Notes under the pieces: model-generated | What the model was told of the DNA's origin: nothing | Seen by the model: only the letters and a program-made list of their open reading frames with translations | Database searches by the model: none | Assembly (NCBI GenBank): GCA_029953675.1 | Contig: JAMWBK010000002.1 | Span: 682,001 to 746,000 of the forward strand | Origin: Rhodosorus marinus CCMP1338 | Taxonomy: Eukaryota; Plantae; Rhodophyta | Length of the DNA: 64,000 bases | Reading direction: 5' to 3' | Shown: positions 47,501 to 60,232 of the stretch, in pieces | Layout of the letters: the number at the start of each line of letters is the position of its first letter | Position numbering within the stretch: position 1 is the first letter of the stretch | Position numbers and translations under genes: made by a program

Positions 47501-49101
47501 GTCTTGTTCTAAAAGAGCAATTCTTTCCATTGCGCTCCGTAGATCGATATCTTTCGCTTCTATTGCGCCTTTAAGCTCCTTGCTAGCAAACAGGATCTTT
47601 TCTATTTCATCCCTTCCTTCCTTGAGCGTAGCTTGGATATCCGTTGAGTATTGCTGGCTGCGTTTTAGCTCGTCTTCCATTTGAGCCATTTGCTCTACTG
47701 CCGTGTTGTACGCACTTTTCAATTCGAGCTGTCTCGTGTTCAACTTCTTCGCTTGTGCCTCCTTGTTCATAAATGCTTCGGTCAGGTTGACTCGCTCCGC
47801 GTGCGCCCTTTCCAGCTCTGCAGCTTGTTGTTCAGCCTTGGACATCAGATTTCTCTTCTCCTTCTCCACCGTGTCCAAGTCCGTCAAAAATTTTGCCCTC
47901 ATGCCTTCCGCTTCGGTTTTGCTGTTTTCAAGCTCAGTCTCAGCTCTTGTAACCTTTTCGTGCACCTGGCTTAATTCAATTTCCAACTGTTCAACCAACA
48001 GCGACCGACTTTGAAGGTCATTCTGAAGTTCTTCCAACCGAGTTTCTTTCTTTGCAGCAAGAGCCAGCTGCTTCTCGAGGAGTTTTATCTTCTCTATTGC
48101 ATCGGACCGCTCTTGCTCCGTCTGTTCTAGCCCCGATTTCAACTCCTCTGCATCTGATTCCATGGATTTGACCTTGGCTACCAACTGCAACGCACAGCCG
48201 GAAACATGAGATTTATCCTTCTTAGCACTTGAAAGGAAGTTTCCATACGAATCATATGGATGGCTAGCTTGATATCTGAAGCACACTGAGCGAAACATGG
48301 ACTTCCATTCGCGATCGGCCATCCGATTATGCGAGGAGTTTTGCTCGGGCAAGAAAGTCTGCTTAACTCACCCCCTTTTGCTCAGAAAGTTTCGCCGCCA
48401 GCTCTCTTTTCATACGATCACGCTCTGTTTCAAGGCTTCGTACTGAATTCTGTACGGAAGAATTTCGAAGTTCAAGATCCCTTATAGAAGCTTCAGAGTT
48501 TTCCTTTTCTCTCTCCAACTCTTCCTTCGTACTCATGAGGCGCTTAACTGCTGCCTTCAACTCTGAACTTCTCTCGTCATTACTCGTCGGCGCAGAACTC
48601 GTCTACGGACATGACACGCAAACGAAAAGGCTCAGCAAAGGAACCGCTTTAATGCGATCGAGACTTTTCCTCTCAACTGCGCACCTCTTGATCTATGTTT
48701 GATAGCTTTTGTTTCAACTTTTCAATCATGTCTCGTCGCTCTTTCGCGACCATTCTCTCCGTTTCAAGTTCATCACGGGACTGTTGAATGTTACTTTCCA
48801 ACTCCGCCATCCTGAGGTTGAAAAAATCCATCATCTTGAAGGCGCTCTCCTGCTGACGCTTGAGAGCTTCATCGGAATTCCATTCCTTCGGCTCAGTTGT
48901 GAAAGCGTTTACTTTCCTACGTAACCCATTCAGCTTCTCGTCCTCCTTCTTCGCCGGGCTTTTGGAGGATGATGGCGAGCCTCCACCACTACTGGTAGGA
49001 GGCTCTCCAAAGTCGAAAATCTCGTCCCCATACATTTGTCTATTGCCACAAAAGACGGACTCGCCTCTTAAGTCATCCGGACTGTACTCGAACTCAGAAT
49101 C
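44546..49101 (-). CDS. Very long coiled-coil protein (over 1400 aa) with C-terminal tail anchor; first exon probably about 49150-49520, unresolved
   Basis: 3.6-kb heptad-rich exon plus exons 48363-48560 and 48673-49101; ends PWLVAGSGLATFLISRLFFR. Confidence 0.85.
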
Positions 49102-50219: not shown

Positions 50220-51309
50220 ATGGGAGGCTTTTTGGCTAAGGTTGGGTTTTGCTTGTGGTGGATAATGGAGTGTTGGATGTGTTTCCAAAACATCACCGTG
50301 GTAGTGACTCCCAAGAAGCGATTGAAAAACGGCGTGCTTTTGCTGTACACAGATTTCATGCTGCCGGGGGATGAGTACGCTGCTGGATTCTTCCAGGTTG
50401 TCAGATCTCCTTAGAAGCGAGGGGTACGCGGTTCATCAGCTCGCGCGTTTCGGTTCATCAGAGAAGCGGGAAAACCTATCATTTCTTCTGTGGGCAAGTC
50501 TGTGTACCCCGTTCTTGGCAACTTGAACACTGGCAAACGGGTTGAAATGTGCTCAAGGAGTCCTCAGATAATACAGCCAAGCTCTCACTACCCCCTTCTT
50601 GGATTACGCTCTTCCAGCTGTAGTGGAGTGAGTTAATGAGCTGCTTCATGTCAAGACTTTCAATCCAAGAATATCGTTGTGATATGGACTTGTTCCACTA
50701 TGCAGTGGTGACTCGACTGGAAAGCAATTAGGGGGGCTGTGGCGATGCTGGGGAAGGCAGTCAGCAAATCTGTTGTCTGCTGTACAAGCAATTTCATTTC
50801 GACTAAGAAGCTGTCACTCATCGAGAAGTAGCGACGAAGGGATTAGGAAATCGAAGGATAAGGAAGTCTACCCCGACTGCACTACTAGATCTCGTGGGGA
50901 AGTTGTGACAGTTTCACCAAGTGCGTGTACGAAAGCCACGTACGTACAAATGTTCGATGAACGCCTACGGATCTTCGACGCCGGGAGAACGTAATGCTTT
51001 GACCGGAGCAATCTGAATTGACTTATCCAATATTCTCCGAAGACAGAGAAATTGCCTCGATCCCCTTTTAGTCCGAAGCCAACTCAGAACAATGGGATTA
51101 TTTAAAAAGAGGTACAGCTGCAAAATTGAGACAGGAAATCGGCGGTGGACTACTGTACTTTGACTACCAAAGTCCACACATACTACCTAACGTTGAATGT
51201 GCGGACTTTGGTAGTCGAAGTGCCGACTAAGAAGTTGCAAGTGGAAACTGAAGCAAGGAAGATCGCTGAGTTGGACAGGTGGGCGCCAGGAGCCAACGTA
51301 GAGGAGTAG
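50220..51309 (+). CDS. Possible multi-exon hypothetical gene
   Basis: MGGFLAK start, several donor/acceptor pairs, coding-like last frame ..VPTKKLQVETEARKIAELDRWAPGANVEE*; joins not resolved. Confidence 0.3.
51157..51221. repeat. 65-nt inverted repeat (25-bp stem with 2 imperfect pairs, 15-nt loop)
   Basis: ACTTTGACTACCAAAGTCCACACAT..ATGTGCGGACTTTGGTAGTCGAAGT. Confidence 0.92.
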
Positions 51310-53425
51310 CAGAGCGGACATCCTCGTGCTGCAAACAAGTTCAGTCCTAGACGAACGCGGAGACTATCTGACACCAGAATAGCAATCCGCAAATCTCTTT
51401 TGGGGGTGGCCGCAGGCACGATATCCCCCCCAACCACGTGCACAATGTCTCCGGCGCAATTGAGCGCACTGCATCGACTTTCCTCTGTATCGAAAGAAAA
51501 TCCTTCGCTCCTGTACAGACCACCGCCCAATCCTCTCTGGTACGGTCGGACGCCACCCAGATCAAGATCCCGCCATCTACCAATCCTACACGAACAAGCT
51601 TTGATCAGACCACATGGTAGCCGATGTTTTTGGCGAAACAAGCATCGTCCAATCTGCCCACGCATGTTGACCGGACCAAGATTCTTCCTTCAACCAATGA
51701 TCGACCGTTGATTTTTTTCGAAATCCAATCGCTCACTTCCGACACCATCATGATTTTAATTTTTCCCTCCAAAAATAAACCTTTGCAATCAACACCGGGT
51801 CGTATCTGTAAAAAGATCTTCTAAAAGATCCAAATTGGTCCGTGTGAAGCGACTACGATGAGTGCAACACGCCCACTTCCTGGTAATTTCATTATTTCTG
51901 AAACAAACCCATGGCGACCGATCAATCATATCGGTATCCATATGGGGGGGAAATCTGGTCACATCGGACCTATAAAATATCTCTTTTTGGATCCATCGTG
52001 GCTGAATTCCGGAATTCAGATACTCATTTGGTTAGGGGTCGTAGTGAAAACAAGTTCCTTACACGCCCAACGCTATGGAGCAAAAAAAAACAAAGAAGGT
52101 TGGAAGAACTTGGCTGGCTGCCGTTTGACCAAAATCATCATAATCGTTTAGCCCTTAAAAAAGAACGTAGCTCAGATATTTTCCCCCAACGATAAATCGA
52201 GGCTCTTCTTTATCACCCATTCCAGTTGGTTCTCGAGTCTTCAATACCGGCAAAACATTGAGTAAAAATAGAGTAACACAAGTGCAAATATCACCAAGAT
52301 CGAACAAGTTTTTCATAACTTCTAATCAATATATCATTAAACTGGATCGACAGTTCACAAAATTTATACAAGACAATATTCCAAGTCCCTATAGAACCAC
52401 AACTTCTCTCATATCGTGAAATAAAAATTAGATATGAAAGAATTATATACAAATACTATATTTTGGCAAGGCTCTCTAAAAGTTCTTAAATAAATGAAAC
52501 CGCCAACGAAACGGTATAATTTAAATCTTGTTATGAAAACTTCAAAGAGTGGTGGAATATGGCTTCTAATCATCTGAGGTATCAGCCAACTACCACCCGT
52601 TTTTTTCTCAGAATTTGAAGACCGCGCTGGTTTTCATGGAATCTAACTTATAAATGGGCCGATGTTCAGGGAGAGGGATGGATTGAGAATTGAGATCTTT
52701 CAAACACCCCTAGTTTTTGGGATTTAACAAAACAGGATTTTTAATGCCTTAATGAACATATTTGTACGATATCTGCATGGTTTGCGTTTGTGAAGGGGGT
52801 TAAAAATTTGGCCTCGGAGAATATGGGGACAGGTTTTGGGACGGTTTGGACTAAGTTATTCAAAGGAAAAAAATGATCCCAACTGGTGTGTCGGTGAGAG
52901 GGAACATATTTACTTTTTCGCATTTGTTTTCGTAGATTGTTTGGTGGGGAGTTGCCTGGGGGGGGGGGGGTTGGTTAAAAGTTTTGAAACCGCAATTCTT
53001 TTTTTGGTGGGGTTTCACATGGGCATGTGAATGGAAAAGGGTCAAGGACTTTTTGGTAAGTTTTTTTTTTTTTGCGGAATATTTCTCTTCCTACTGCTTT
53101 GGGTTTTTTTGAGGGTAGAAGGGAGTGTTGTTTTGTATTGGGGAAGGTGGAGGCTCACAAAGCCCGGGGGGTTGGGAGGGGGGTAGTGAAACAAGAGGGT
53201 GAAAAAAGCAAAGGAAAAAAAAAAGAAAGAAAAGAAACAGCTAGGTGTTTTTCTTTTTTCAAGTGAGGGAGAACAAGAGGCAATATTAATGAGATGTGTG
53301 CATGCATGAGCGACCACAGGTTATTAGTAGGAGTGGATGAGGGAGGCTGGACGAGTGCGATTGAGGGAGCGCATTGGGAGGTGCTGTTGAGCAAAGCTCA
53401 ACTTTCTTTTTTTTGGCGGGGAACG

Positions 53426-56416
53426 ATGGAGGAAGTTGGAGTTGATAGCAAGGTTTTATAGAGCAGGAGCATTGCTTAGGGTTTTGACCGGCTCTGTTGG
53501 GGTTTTCGCGCAGGGTTTCTTTAATTTAGGAAACTTACGTGATGGTGGTCAGGGTTGATACGGTTAGTGCCCACATGGGCGCTGACGTAGTTGGGAAGGG
53601 TGTGAGTGGGGCGAACGGAATGTTTCATCCAACTCTGGACAACAGCATGTACCATGCTAAAAGTCCCAGTCCTGCTGGTGAGTCTCGTCTGATGCCGATC
53701 AATTGAAGATTGACTCAGTCGCTAACAATATTGAACCGTTCGTTATTGCAGAGGATTATTCCGTGAACTTCAAAGAGCTGAAACTGGACGAGGATGAAGA
53801 GAAACTCTCAGTTGAAGCTTTCTGTCAGGCTTCTGACGGGACCTGTTTCACAAAACAGTTTGACGAGGATACAAAGTCTCTTTTGCTGAGTGGACTTGAT
53901 CTCGTCTCGATTTCTTTCAAGTCCCCGGCCGAATTCGTCCTTAGACGGTTGAAAGAAGTATCGCTTGCTGCGAACAAGCTCACAGAGATCGATTTGTCCA
54001 TCCTGCAAGAGTGTGAGAATATTGAGGTAAGGCAGAGAACACGCTCATGGGTCCTTCACATGTGCGCAAGCTCACCCACTTTTCTTCCGCCTGGCACTCT
54101 TAGGCTATCATGCTAAACGGCAATCGACTGGAGAACATTAATTTGTCAATGCTTGGAGCGTGTGAAAAGCTTCAACGACTCTGGCTGCACAACAACCAAC
54201 TTACTAACTTCAGCATGAATGTCATTAGCAACTTCCCCGCGCTGCAGTCACTCAGCTTGGAAAATAACTTTTTGGACAACGAATTGTCCTTGTACCCACT
54301 GGCAAAGTATGCATTACAACTGGGAACACGTGGAGTCCGGAATATGATGGTGATGCTTAGACGAGTAACCTGATTTGTAAATGTATAGGTGCCGAGTTCT
54401 GAGATCTCTACGGGTCGGAGGAAACAGCTTGAATGGAACGCTTGACGTCACCCCTCTGTTGTCGTGCAAAACCCTGTCCGTATTTGATGCAGACGCATCG
54501 GTTAAGCTGATTGCGTACACGAGCAATGCTAGCGATCTCCCCTCGCTCCCACCGGCTTTGAGGAAGCGAACACTCGACGTAGAATGGAGGGAAGAGGCAA
54601 CGTTCGCGAAGCAGATGCAGCGTGATCGCCATCTTAAGAAAATGAAGGTCCTTGCAATAGGCTTTCAACCACGGCACGTTGGCGCAATGGCCCAGCTGCT
54701 TTGTGCCTCGGGAACTCTTGAAATGATCGTTTACAAAGAGAGTATGGCGCTGAGTACGTATTCAAAGCCTCCCACAACTATGGTCATGTTTGGATGGGAG
54801 TAATTCTGAGACTGCTGCTCTTACTCTTCAGGTCCTGAGATGCTCAAGGATTATAGCATTATTCTAGTTCATCCAACAAAGGAGGAGAAGCTCCAGGAGC
54901 TCCGTATCGCGACTAAGAAACTTCCGGTTGTGGTGGTCGGAAACAGTGCCACTTACGCCGATGCTGCGAGCAGGTGCCTCCGTAAAGGTGCTCGATGCTT
55001 CATACCCGAGCCGCTAACAGAGCGAACGGCAATGAGTATCAGAAGTTTAGCGCAACAGTTTGCACGGACACAGACGAACGTGGTCATGGGACGCAGCGCT
55101 CCTCAGCGAGTACAGGCGCAGGAGAAGAAGAAGAAAATGGTGATCGATTTTGATGAGATGCGCACGATGTACGAGGGCAGGAATGGTCGAATCAAGGAGA
55201 CCCCGCGGCAGAGGTTGGAGGAGTCCGCTCTGGGAATGTTAGCTCAGAGAAAGAGAGGTCCCCTTCAGCGAGATGATTTCTCGCCAGTGGCGACGCTGTG
55301 CGGTCTCCCTGCATGCGCCGGCGAGGTTCTATTTGACGCAGTGGTTCGCTTTGATGTGACAGATGGTCTCGACGAACCGAACGCCTCAGAGATCGGAGTG
55401 AGCAAGGAGCTGCTCATGAAGTTTTGGAATGAGAGATTGAGGCACTTCGACACCGAAACTCGCCTTTTCAACATTCTATGCGGGCCGAACTCGAATCTGG
55501 CGAGTGAGGAGAATATGAAGGTACCTTGCACTCATGGGCACATGACCCCCTTGTTCCCGAAACACGAAGAAACAGCTTCTCACTTTTCTTTTATGTATTC
55601 GTAGGTGGTGATGGGCAAGCTTCTTCGCAGTCGAGGAAGTGGCTTTTCGTTGATTCGGGCAAATGCAAGGGACCAGTCGTTGAAGCAGTTGGAGGAGATT
55701 GCAACAGCGATTGTATTTTTTGGAATATCTGGTAGCATGCAACCGCTGAGGAAAAGCCAGCTGCGGAAGATCAACTTTTGCAAAGTGCTAAACACCGTGG
55801 AATCGGGCGTCTTCAACGGGTTCGCTGCCTCTCTGAGACCTGACAGATTCCAGGGTGTCCTTTGCGCTTTGAGCGATGCTGGAAACAAAGGCTATATGGA
55901 GCTTGAGGATGTTCAGCTATTTAATGCGGAGCATAGGTTGCTTGTGAATGCCGCCGTGAAGCGCTTGTTCAAAACTTACTGCGACAAGGACCAAAAGATG
56001 TCAGTTGGCGAGTTCACCAGGTTCTACTTGGCCAGTATGGATCCAACTAGTGACGCGGCTTGTAAATATTTATTCCCGGCACTGGACGCAGATCTCGATG
56101 GTTTTGTGAGCGCAGCTGATTTGGCCATAATGTACCGTAGCAAGAAGTACGATGTAGAGTTTGGAGTTTTGTGGAGTTCATTACTGGACTTGATTGGTAG
56201 TAGCAATAATTCTACGAGAACTGACCAGGTGTCCTCATCCAATATTCTAGCGTTGGCCGGGAAAGACAGGTAGGAGAATCGGAAATATTTGTATGCTTTC
56301 TTAACGTGATGCTTATGACTCACATGTTGTTTTTCATTCCCCACAGAGCGCTTTTGCTGAAGACACTGATATACATCGATGATGATATGGAGGTTGATAT
56401 TCATAGATCGCGATGA
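53426..56416 (+). CDS. LRR + pseudo-receiver (CheY-like) + PP2A regulatory B''-type EF-hand domain protein (about 813 aa)
   Basis: Exons 53426-53452, 53530-53677, 53752-54026, 54104-54306, 54389-54753, 54832-55520, 55605-56269, 56347-56416, all in phase; LxxLxLxxN repeats; LPVVVVG..CLRKGARCFIPEP; MSVGEFTRFYLA..KYLFPALDADLDGFVS. Confidence 0.82.
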
Positions 56417-57264
56417 ACCAGATTTGGTATCAGCTTTGAAAGAAAAAGCCAAGAGGAACACCCCAGCTGTGGGATACGGCCATTTTCGTTAGCCTTCGGG
56501 CGCAGGAAGTCGATCCGCTCGTAGATTTGGCGGAAGATTTGCTATTTTGTGGACGACGTGTACATGTTCTCTCGCATTTTTACGTCCACAATACTACAAT
56601 TATTTTTGAAAACTCGTGTTAATAAAGATGTTTTCCGATTAAAACTCTGAAGAAACAGCTTCCTCAAATGTAGCTGCCCCCTCGTCATGCAGAGACTCAC
56701 CGGTTGGCTGGTGCTCCGCGGAGGAAAGCTCTCGAAGAAATTGGTGGTTTTGTTGCAAGCCAAGGGTCCTGACGAGGAAGCTTCTGGTTACCAACTGGCT
56801 TCTGGAACCTCTCTCGAACAATGATTTGGGTTTCCAAAATGTAACGCATTCCGCATGAGCTGCAGGTTCTATGGATGCTCTTCATCAATGGTGCGGCTCT
56901 GGCTCTTACCCGATATCGTTCACGGGGTTTTGCTTGTGCACGGAATTCACCTACGCCGGTGGGGGAAAACAGGACCTCATGGAACGAGTGTTAGATAAAT
57001 GCGAGTTCAAACAGTCACTAGCCTCTTGAGACCCATTCCCTTTCCCTTGCGTCTCCTTCACGGGCCTAACAAAACGTAGGTATTCGATAGGAACACTGTT
57101 TCAGCTCTGCGCTTCGATAATAATCTCGCCGATGTAGGAAAGTTCGCACCAAACTTCATCGCGTGAGAGCTTTAGCGAACGGATATGAAAACTTTGGTTA
57201 AGAAAACCGAAAGAGGACGTGGAACTTGAGGAGTTTCATGAGTTTGGTCCGCTGTTTGTAGGAA

Positions 57265-57756
57265 ATGAACTGGTGGTTATCGGTCGGCGGTTTGGCGTTG
57301 TTGATTGGTCTTCTCTATGGAGGTTACGTCCTCTTGGAGAAAGAACTTTCGAAACCACCTGGATCACGTCGCAGCACCGCTGCTCCTCCACCTTTGAAGA
57401 AGAAAAAGCAGGGGAAGGAGAAGAAGCCGAAAGCTTTTGTTCCGAAGCGAGTTGAGGAGGGGGCACCTGAGATGCTCCCCGTGCCGCCCGAGGACCCAGA
57501 CGAGAAGGTTTTCGGTGGGAAGATTACAGCCCGTGTGATTGACTTAGCGGATGCTAACGAATCAGAATGGCGGAGCGTACGGACCGTTCGCCAGGATGCA
57601 CAACTTCGTGAAGCCAGGCAGAAGGTTGCCGACCAAAAGAAGCAGGAGGAGGAGGCGCAAATCGCAGATATGAAGAAGGCCGAAAAAAATCGACGGCGAA
57701 GAGAGAACAAGAAAGAAATGGACAAGCTCGTTCGAGAGCTGCAGCGTCAATCCTGA
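57265..57756 (+). CDS. Hypothetical single-pass membrane protein, Lys-rich with a C-terminal coiled coil
   Basis: Intronless 163-aa ORF; N-terminal hydrophobic anchor WLSVGGLALLIGLLYGGYVLL. Confidence 0.7.
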   Translation: MNWWLSVGGLALLIGLLYGGYVLLEKELSKPPGSRRSTAAPPPLKKKKQGKEKKPKAFVPKRVEEGAPEMLPVPPEDPDEKVFGGKITARVIDLADANESEWRSVRTVRQDAQLREARQKVADQKKQEEEAQIADMKKAEKNRRRRENKKEMDKLVRELQRQS

Positions 57757-58279: not shown

Positions 58280-60232
58280 TTACTTCGCATTCGACGCTTG
58301 TCTATACTTTGGCAACGAAGCCCGCATCTCCTCCTGGGACGGTCCAGAACATACACGAGCTGAGGTAAGTATGAGCTCCTCAAGGGCTTCCCTCATCCGC
58401 AAACGCCGGTCTTGTCAAAGTCCTCGACCCCAGTGCGAGGTGTCTATTGGACTCGTTCAACATGCGGTCGTATCAAGAGAAGGAGAATCCCCTAGCTTTT
58501 GCATTCCGACTAGGAGAAAACAGCAATATGCATGGAACAGACACGTCCATGGTGAAAGGAGGGCATGAGCTTACCATGGAGATATCCGGTAGTGGAAACA
58601 CAAGATAGCCCTCAGCCGAAGGCTGCTTAGTCATCGCTTGGTATGCTTGCCCCTCCTGGGTACTGCTTTGATTTACAGGTTCTGCAGGAGTGTGGACATG
58701 CTGAGTAGTGGTAGGCGGTCCTGGCTGGGTTTGATTTTCGTTTCCTGCTGTTGAAAGTTGTGAAATTGTCAGCCCTTCGGGCACTCTCATCATTCCCTTG
58801 CACGACCAACCCTTACCGTTTCCGACAGTCTCTGGCGCGGTGATTTTCGGATCAGCTGCCTGAGAGAGGGCGCCGCTCTCTGCGCTGTAGTGTGCACCTA
58901 TAGCCGTCCCGTTCGAGGGTCGTTGTGCTGTTCCCTCGAGCTGAGCATGTGACGTCTGTACAGGCCCCGCTGTTGGTGGCGATTGTTGTTGTGCTGGTGG
59001 TCGTTGCGGGGGGGCTCCTTGAGAATAGCCTGGGTGCTTAGACCAAGTACCGGCTATTGCGCGCAGTGACGAAAGGAACAGTTCAGTTGCTGCCCACAGT
59101 TTGCGTGTCTGTCTAAGCAGATTGGGGTAAACCTACTAGGACTTCCGTGAGGGTTCGGAGGCTGCTGGTGGCCCAATCCTTGGTACTGGGGCGTGGACAC
59201 ATAGCCCTGCTGTCCAGCTCGGTCGTGCCAACCCTGCTGTGGGTAGGGCGCTTGTTGCATCGGAAGGGCACCTTGTCGCGCTTGATTGAGACCCTGAGGT
59301 AGCTGTGCTCCGCCCACCCCAGGTGGGGCGTCAGGGGCAGCCTGGGGGGCTTTTGGCGACATGCCCGGCGGCCCTCCCTGTTGCGACATTCCATGTACGC
59401 CATGGGCCATGCTCTGCGGAGCTGCTGACATAGCTCCCATTTGATTTGGAGGCCCAGAAGGTGGCCCACCCATGTGGGTTGGCATTGGCCCTCGCCTTGG
59501 CGAGCCTTGAGGAGGACCTGGGTACTGACCACCGTAGTAACCAGGATACCCCATTGGTGGCGGAGGTCTCCGATGAGGCATGTAATGCCCTTGTGGACCC
59601 ATCCGTCCCGGTGGTCCCGGTGGTCCCGGTGGTCCACCTGGTCCTCCAGGGCCAGGGTACGGTCCGTTCCCGGGGGGTAAGGGCCCACCCGGGGGACCTC
59701 CCCGATACCCATAATGGAACTGACCGTAGGGAACCGACCCTGGCGGTCCAGCACCCGGCATACCCCCTTGCGCACGTGCCTTCTTTGCCGCCTCCTCCTC
59801 CAAGTCCGGGACTCCCTCCATGCCGTAAACCGATATTTCTATAGAATCACGGCCTTCAACAGCATTCGGTACTCTGGGATCATAGGCGAGAGATTTGTTA
59901 GAACGCTTCGAAAGAGCCATTAAACAGTGATGATTCTTATCTCGGAGCGGGTGGGGGAAGTGCCAGTCCCCCAAGCCGTATCCTGCATCATCCTCCTAAC
60001 CAAATCGCACTTGTCGGGATTTTGCTCACTTTTCGATGGTCTGCTTATGCAGCTGCTGGCAATGGATAACAAGACCCGACAGCATTTGAAGCCGCTTCCC
60101 ACAGTAGTTGCATTTGAAATGCTTGCTCTTCTGGTGCATCACCAAAACGCTCTCATCATTGAAGTCCCGATCGCAGTACCAGCAAAAAATCCTCTTCACA
60201 TCCTCATGATCGCGTTTCTTTTTCCTCCCCAT
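58280..60232 (-). CDS. ZNF207: ZNF207/BuGZ (SUF4-like) zinc-finger protein
   Basis: MGRKKK..FCWYCDRDF..HQKSKHFKC..C..LVIHCQQLH, VPNAVEGR, Pro/Gly/Gln-rich middle, GLEBS-like PDISM|EEMRASLPKY. Confidence 0.93.

Follow-up and report, generated by a model that had tools for sequence, protein, structure and literature searches.

A 64,000-nucleotide (nt) stretch of the genome of the red alga Rhodosorus marinus CCMP1338 (assembly GCA_029953675.1, contig JAMWBK010000002.1, positions 682,001 to 746,000 of the forward strand; referred to here as the window, with coordinates counted from its first letter) contains a plus-strand gene at 53542-56416 whose 800-residue product joins three modules. Leucine-rich repeats (LRRs) are followed by a CheY-like pseudo-receiver and then by a core of the B''/PR72 type, the type found in one class of regulatory subunits of protein phosphatase 2A (PP2A). 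B'' subunits set the place and the substrates of PP2A and confer Ca2+ responsiveness on it. The LRRs, the receiver fold and the B'' core are made as one polypeptide that is conserved across Rhodophyta. What is new here is a probable B''-type subunit with LRRs and a pseudo-receiver as its putative targeting end, conserved in the phylum and invisible to routine annotation. Judged from sequence, its link to PP2A is plausible. An earlier note on the window had proposed the same three-module architecture, and each of the three modules has now found support.

The gene model was derived from a three-frame translation of positions 53300-56700 together with an inspection of splice sites. It consists of seven exons (53542-53677, 53752-54026, 54104-54306, 54389-54753, 54832-55520, 55605-56269, and 56347-56416) that all join in phase into a coding sequence of 2403 nt, which ends with a TGA stop at 56414-56416. 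The six introns are all of the GT-AG type and are very uniform in length (74, 77, 82, 78, 84, and 77 nt). The lengths of two of them, 54754-54831 and 55521-55604, are divisible by three, yet retaining either one would cut the protein short because each contains an in-frame stop. The earlier note had described eight exons and 2442 nt. That model is the seven-exon model plus a 27-nt exon at 53426-53452 on the plus strand (MEEVGVDSK, joined at 53530) and the 12 nt that precede the ATG at 53542. The additional exon, a candidate 5' mini-exon, is possible but unproven because the donor of its intron (GTTTTA) is atypical, with T at +3 where the six other donors have a purine, and because the orthologues of Bangiopsis and Purpureofilum begin with MVAT..., resembling the MVVR... 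of the 53542 start. The mini-exon intron would be 77 nt long, a size in line with the other introns, and the presence of the mini-exon changes no domain of the protein. The sequence motifs quoted in the earlier note (KVLAIG, AQLLCASG, YSIILVH, LPVVVVG, CLRKGARCFIPEP, EFTRFYLASMDPTS, and KYLFPALDADLDG) were all found in the spliced product.

Evidence for the splicing pattern comes from transcript-derived proteins. The best database match is an R. marinus transcript-derived protein of 511 residues (P0001) that aligns with residues 290-800 without a gap and with 96.9% identity. This alignment confirmed the junctions 54753/54832 and 55520/55605, the two that had been flagged for checking, and likewise the junction 56269/56347. 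The junctions 54026/54104 and 54306/54389 are backed by the alignment of two orthologues, P0002 and P0003, and the tblastn blocks of P0002 stop at exon borders. For the junction 53677/53752, GT-AG and the reading phase are the sole basis. Both orthologues are full-length and transcript-derived, one from Bangiopsis sp. CCMP1999 (P0002, 805 residues) and one from Purpureofilum (P0003, 804 residues), and they are 52-53% identical to the R. marinus protein over 91% of its length. Further evidence for a single gene comes from exon 4 (54389-54753), which codes for the last LRR units and for receiver strand beta1 and so crosses a module boundary. An R. marinus paralogue of 1032 residues (P0020) has the same order of modules. 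In two more distant relatives encoded on genomic contigs of 22 kb and 10 kb (proteins P0004 and P0005; contigs L001 and L002), the three-part protein is one uninterrupted open reading frame (ORF).

The B''/PR72-type core occupies residues 429-799 (55137-56410, plus strand, with introns 55521-55604 and 56270-56346 inside). It is preceded by a basic linker ending in QEKKKK (residues 407-428; 55071-55136, plus strand), which in other family members is of low complexity and variable length. A phmmer search matched the core to PR72 (4i5j) with an E-value of 4.4e-5, and a 7-sequence profile matched PR72/PR70 at ~2e-10 over roughly 300 residues. An AlphaFold2 model of the core (pLDDT 78.9) retrieved PR70/PR72 in Foldseek with E-values of 1e-13 to 1e-10 and TM-scores of 0.72-0.75 over ~370 columns, and the next unrelated match was at 4.7e-3. 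The PR70 matches, at 1e-13, covered both holoenzyme-bound and lone PR70. A profile-profile comparison by hhalign with 13 canonical B'' proteins gave a probability of 99.7% and an E-value of 1.1e-26 over 316 columns. Because the profile, fold, and profile-profile matches agree, the homology of the C-terminal ~370 residues to a complete B''/PR72 core is secure, even though the Pfam B'' models miss it. Thus, the C-terminal region that the earlier note had called B''/PR72-like is genuine.

The middle module, residues 288-406 (54636-55070, plus strand, with intron 54754-54831 inside), was modelled by AlphaFold2 with eight homologues (pLDDT 92.9, pTM 0.87). The modelled order, b1-a1-b2-a2-b3-a3-b4-a4-b5-a5, is that of the (beta-alpha)5 receiver fold. 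A Foldseek search of the PDB returned 217 matches at E<=1e-3, and nearly all of the 50 listed were receivers (TM-scores of 0.60-0.81), including DctD, PhoP, FixJ, NtrX, CheY, and the atypical CpaE/TadZ receivers. The earlier note's reading thereby survived the fold check that might have overturned it. A 29-sequence family profile matched NtrC (6.4e-6), RpfC (1.2e-5), NtrX (1.9e-5), and dozens more receivers below 0.01 in the PDB. In these alignments the position after beta3 fell on NtrC Asp54, and a Glu-Pro pair fell on Lys104-Pro105. Out of 1.84 billion proteins, the family profile also recovered two genuine response regulators with multiple receivers (P0117 and P0149), which match Pfam Response_reg at 1e-53 to 1e-72. 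Searches that used fewer sequences returned less: with the single sequence of the segment, the best phmmer E-value in the PDB was 1.1 and Pfam Response_reg gave no match, and an 8-sequence profile gave a suggestive E-value of 0.008, so that recognition of the domain took the 29-sequence profile and the structure model.

The receiver fold appears to have lost its phosphorylation chemistry. In the R. marinus protein, G296/F297 occupy the position of the acidic pair, H340 that of the phospho-acceptor Asp, G363 that of the Thr/Ser, and E386-P387 that of the Lys-Pro motif. The catalytic positions had earlier been read as IG, H, and EP; H340 and E386-P387 stood, while alignment to real receivers placed the acidic pair at G296-F297 instead of I-G. 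The same replacements recur among 40 family domains. The acidic pair reads G in 30 and F in 35 of them, the Thr/Ser position is G in 34, and the Lys position is E in 21 and D in 8. The acceptor position varies (R in 11, Q in 8, H in 6, E in 5, D in 4, and K, S, and Y in 2 each). In other words, the whole family shows replacements at four of the five catalytic positions. Phosphorylation needs an acidic pair, a Thr/Ser, and a Lys. The middle domain has none of these, and on this alignment evidence it is a pseudo-receiver in which Asp phosphorylation is unlikely, as had been suspected. A rule of a charge-swapped pair, with a basic residue at the position of Asp57 and an acidic one at that of Lys109, described the first eight sequences and was dropped once the acceptor position was seen to vary across the 40. 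The best-conserved stretch of the pseudo-receiver is alpha4-beta5-alpha5 (ADAASRCLRKGA.CF.EPL..R.A..IR.LAQ), the face through which real receivers dimerise and exert their output.

The LRR module spans residues 89-272 (53880-54590, plus strand, with introns 54027-54103 and 54307-54388 inside). It matched LRR_8 (E 2.2e-12) and LRR_4 (7e-8) in Pfam and LRR proteins in the PDB (best E 6e-18). Five clear LxxLxLxxNxL units of 24-25 residues start at residues 112, 136, 160, 184, and 209 and have degenerate units on both sides, two in all; the earlier count of about six is corrected to five clear and two degenerate repeats. The units are followed by a conserved motif, LPPALRKR..V.W. Distantly related members share 40-49% identity in the LRR module, a figure somewhat inflated by the consensus leucines, against 24-35% in the other two modules. 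As the LRR module is the most conserved one, its sequence suggests that what it holds is a protein partner that stays fixed, not a ligand that varies.

The same architecture recurs in a family of proteins. A profile of the receiver-like and B'' parts retrieved 322 cluster representatives at E<=1e-3, of which 43 reached E<=1e-30. Three domain hidden Markov models showed LRR, receiver-like, and B'' parts, in that order, in about 30 representatives of clusters at 50% identity. The named members belong to Rhodosorus, Bangiopsis, Purpureofilum, Porphyridium purpureum, P. aerugineum, Compsopogon, Porphyra umbilicalis, and Galdieria phlegrea. Every named match with the full architecture is red-algal, and many other representatives come from metagenome or read-archive assemblies. 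R. marinus itself is placed in the Stylonematophyceae by a taxonomy lookup; we take Bangiopsis and Purpureofilum to belong there too and the named members to span at least five red-algal classes. None of the named matches was identified as belonging to the Florideophyceae or Rhodellophyceae. Public names for members include Internalin-A (Porphyridium purpureum KAA8497315.1) and hypothetical or EF-hand domain-containing protein (Porphyra umbilicalis OSX77411.1). Such names mislead because annotation at the level of Pfam sees the LRRs alone, apart from a weak EF-hand_7 match. No description of the LRR-pseudo-receiver-B'' architecture was found in the literature or in database names. Thus, the view that it is not known from characterised proteins holds as far as could be found, but the architecture is pan-rhodophyte rather than rare, and species carry several paralogues each.

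At least three genes of the family occur in R. marinus: the one at 53542-56416, the one for the 1032-residue P0020, and one for a 588-residue protein (KAJ8900902.1, P0041). The last of these combines a disordered N-terminus with a family-type B'' core and has no LRR or receiver. It reads IPSV where canonical B'' proteins have IPxF, has no Pfam match, and is named Calmodulin in UniRef. Two transcript-derived forms of the P0020 paralogue (P0018 and P0020; MMETSP0011) differ by a 41-residue insertion that repeats YLPVCAAGILYEAVKRDKIKHGASSPEV, either an assembly artefact or an isoform. On Logan contigs of 5-14 kb, a separate B''-like group of four proteins (P0070, P0071, P0073, and P0082; 389-559 residues) lacks both the LRR and the receiver parts and gives no significant Pfam match. 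Like the red-algal family, its members have a degenerated EF1, carry Asp at position 12 of EF2, and lack Cys-Gln in the helix for the catalytic subunit, and they may represent an intermediate or a sister clade.

How might the B'' core engage PP2A? In the PR70 holoenzyme, contacts are made by a hydrophobic motif (Ile125/Phe128), by a surface centred on EF2 that forms interface AB-2 with the A subunit (Trp277, Arg288, Arg362, Arg398, and Asp403), and by helix 439-446 (Cys439, Gln440, Asp443, and Lys446), which sits on the catalytic subunit; F128A and R398D weaken binding severely, and D443K halves it (PMC3698643). These contacts were mapped by alignments with PR70 and with 18 B''-like proteins without LRR and receiver parts. 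MAFFT places the candidate hydrophobic motif V430-I431-D432-F433 (55140-55151, plus strand) on the column of the canonical IPxFY, that is, of PR70 Ile125/Phe128. IPxFY latches on HEAT repeat 1 of the A subunit. The Ile-Phe spacing of VIDF is one residue shorter than that of IPxFY, its Phe is invariant in a 7-sequence alignment, and Porphyridium members read [IL]PPL at this position. The EF2 loop (D717-D728, DADLDGFVSAAD; 56085-56120, plus strand) has positions 1, 3, 5, 6 (Gly), and 9 intact and gives the weak EF-hand_7 match (6e-5). Its D719 is the equivalent of PR70 Asp403. In B'' subunits the Ca2+ loop of EF2 is needed for the holoenzyme to assemble. By sequence, the ligand positions 1, 3, 5, 9, and 12 and Gly6 are intact in nearly all family members; position 12 is Asp in all of them versus Glu in most canonical B'' proteins. 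A basic residue is kept in the family at the position of Arg288 (K611 in the R. marinus protein). The helix VLWSSLLDLIG (56166-56198, plus strand) is the equivalent of helix 439-446, and its D751 corresponds to Asp443, an Asp that is invariant in 28 family members.

These features lead to a model in which the protein is a divergent, still PP2A-docking B'' subunit of a red-alga-specific branch that is regulated through EF2 alone. On the strength of the sequence and the structure models, this reading is probable, though by no means firmly so. According to it, the B'' core would dock on the A-C core enzyme as PR70 does, via VIDF, the Ca2+-loaded EF2 surface, and the D751 helix. The LRR and pseudo-receiver would stand in for the variable N-terminal extensions that guide other B'' subunits to their substrates or locations. 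The concave face of the LRR module would hold a conserved protein partner, the pseudo-receiver would act independently of phosphorylation, its strongly conserved alpha4-beta5-alpha5 making it an adaptor or a dimerisation module, and Ca2+ would act through EF2 alone. To our knowledge, every characterised protein with the B'' fold is a PP2A subunit.

Several observations weigh against PP2A docking and would fit a different role, in which a B''-like core was re-used as a Ca2+-binding scaffold and the protein is an LRR-based, Ca2+-regulated adaptor with no link to PP2A or to any phosphatase. Residues that contact the A and C subunits in PR70 have been lost. Arg398, which in PR70 meets Glu100 and Trp140 of the A subunit, is replaced by P714 here and by P, G, D, A, or S across the family, Arg362 falls in a segment deleted from the protein, and Trp277 is a gap in the MAFFT table or a Met by manual reading of the hmmsearch alignment. 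Cys439/Gln440, which are well conserved in canonical B'' proteins, are missing, and the Lys446 equivalent is not conserved either. In all members of the family the EF1 loop has degenerated or expanded; in the R. marinus protein the region reads SDAGNKGYMELED (55872-55910, plus strand) where canonical B'' proteins keep KFWELDTDHD, and Ca2+ binding by it is unlikely on these grounds. The family is also too divergent for the Pfam B'' signatures. Neither EF-hand_13 (PF17958) nor P2R3B_EF-hand (PF21161) matched the R. marinus protein at E<=1, and among 10 relatives the sole match at E<=0.1 was one weak hit to PF21161 (E 0.033), whereas the canonical P0081 and P0084 match PF17958 at 1e-30 to 1e-34. 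Some of these changes are shared by the B''-like group of P0070, P0071, P0073, and P0082. On the other hand, the fold of the whole core is preserved, and the candidate hydrophobic motif, EF2 with its Asp403 equivalent, and the Asp443 equivalent are kept family-wide. The A subunit may have co-evolved with the altered contacts. A Ca2+ scaffold appears to be a serious but less probable explanation than a divergent PP2A-docking subunit.

Other explanations find far less room. The apparent fusion could stem from two neighbouring genes or transcripts that were mis-joined, an LRR gene and a receiver-plus-EF-hand gene starting at Met290. P0001, the sole conspecific transcript-derived protein in the databases, starts exactly at Met290, and no R. 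marinus sequence over exons 1-3 was recovered among the database matches. However, Met290 lies inside exon 4, which is stop-free onward from the LRR. Taken together, the spanning exon, the full-length orthologues and paralogue, and the single-ORF relatives on L001 and L002 make the two-gene objection very unlikely. Because of where P0001 begins, the sequence leaves room for an additional short isoform that may start at Met290 via an internal promoter. According to another explanation, the middle domain still works as a receiver that takes its phosphate on a non-canonical residue or, in the few members with one, on Asp, and it would link a His-Asp relay to the phosphatase. Its fold, its profile homology to real receivers, the recovery of P0117 and P0149, and an acceptor position that is Asp in 4 and Glu in 5 of the 40 domains would agree with this. 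The Mg2+-binding acidic pair, however, is G-F in 30-35 of the 40, the Thr/Ser and Lys positions are Gly in 34 and Glu or Asp in 29, and the acceptor here is His340, which leaves a working receiver highly improbable. Least probable of all, to the point of being negligible, is a cell-surface, receptor-like sensor of an external ligand. The 24-residue repeats of the typical class do resemble those of extracellular receptor LRRs. Against this, the N-terminus is not hydrophobic, and the 800-residue protein has no signal peptide and no segment resembling a membrane span (the maximum 19-residue Kyte-Doolittle mean is 1.52). For this reason the protein is predicted to be soluble and intracellular, presumably cytosolic, rather than a surface sensor. 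Its LRR module is conserved instead of diversified, and a Pfam scan of the protein found no kinase domain. The ligand-sensing role suggested in the earlier note is thus not favoured.

The divergent B'' subunit proposed here can be compared with several known systems. The closest are human PR70 (PPP2R3B) and PR72/PR130 (PPP2R3A; structures 4i5l, 4i5n, 4mew, and 4i5j). Their whole core fold is like that of the red-algal protein, with both EF-hand units included: the likeness starts past the hydrophobic motif and reaches as far as the helix that binds the catalytic subunit. PR70 and the red-algal protein share a basic residue at the Arg288 position, Asp at the positions of Asp403 and Asp443, and the EF2 loop. 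The overall design, a conserved core with a variable targeting extension, is the same. There are several differences: identity to PR70/PR72 is ~16%, the red-algal EF1 has degenerated, its EF2 has Asp, not Glu, at position 12, and Arg398, Arg362, and Cys439/Gln440 are not conserved. We know of no characterised B'' subunit with an N-terminal extension of folded LRR and pseudo-receiver domains. Among non-vertebrate B'' subunits, TON2/FASS and AtB'' of plants and RSA-1 of C. elegans direct PP2A to structures via partner proteins. The canonical plant-type protein P0084 aligns with the red-algal protein over the same core, but these non-vertebrate subunits keep IPxFY, the KFWELDTDHD EF1 loop, the DCQ..D helix, and EF-hand_13, and they have no LRR or receiver.

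For the N-terminal modules, likeness is found elsewhere. In SDS22 (PP1), SHOC2-MRAS-PP1C, and PHLPP (LRRs fused to PP2C), an LRR solenoid serves as the partner or substrate scaffold of a Ser/Thr phosphatase. These proteins act on PP1 or carry a PP2C catalytic domain, and we know of none that is joined to a receiver fold or a PP2A regulatory subunit. CheY-like folds that have lost the acceptor chemistry and act by protein contact occur in plant PRR/TOC1, in cyanobacterial KaiA/CikA, and in bacterial TadZ/CpaE, and the atypical receivers 4dn6 and 4lda are among the top Foldseek matches of the pseudo-receiver. The red-algal pseudo-receiver differs from these known ones in sitting between an LRR module and a B'' core, with no CCT domain, kinase, or ATPase. 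A Pfam scan found no CCT domain, unlike in plant PRR/TOC1, and the C-terminus is the B'' core instead.

As is usual in a eukaryote, the genomic context is uninformative and adds nothing to the functional reading. There is no second copy or paralogue of the gene within the window. The neighbouring ORFs at 48673-49035 (minus strand), 51183-51665 (minus), 57265-57756 (plus), and 59054-59974 (minus) have no Pfam matches. The one at 57265-57756 would give a 163-residue product that has a tail rich in Lys and Glu and, N-terminally, a hydrophobic segment, and the one at 59054-59974 would give a 306-residue product rich in Pro, Gly, and Gln. In the two intron-less relatives (L001:6531-8196 and L002:6101-7969), the family gene is followed by a TFIID-31kDa/TAF9 gene on the opposite strand and then by MRP-S33; these neighbours are absent from the window. 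Upstream of the R. marinus gene, the region 52900-53260 contains long homopolymer runs (G12, T13, and A11) and A/G-rich stretches, and its G+C content is low (0.42 over 52001-54000). This region is presumably intergenic or promoter sequence.

A broader possibility, held tentatively, is that red algae remodelled the B'' class into lineage-wide fusions of LRRs, a pseudo-receiver, and a Ca2+-dependent PP2A-docking core. Together with the stand-alone type represented by KAJ8900902.1, such fusions would be the only B'' subunits of Rhodophyta and might form a major Ca2+/phosphatase hub in a phylum with a very reduced set of signalling genes. Recognition of the family corrects the misleading public names Internalin-A, Calmodulin, and hypothetical protein. 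The family would add a eukaryotic pseudo-receiver beyond the plant clock proteins, and it would carry the recurring theme of an LRR scaffold joined to a Ser/Thr phosphatase from PP1 and PP2C over to PP2A. If the reading is true, a conserved red-algal family with multiple paralogues would open a first way into how Rhodophyta target PP2A and signal with Ca2+.

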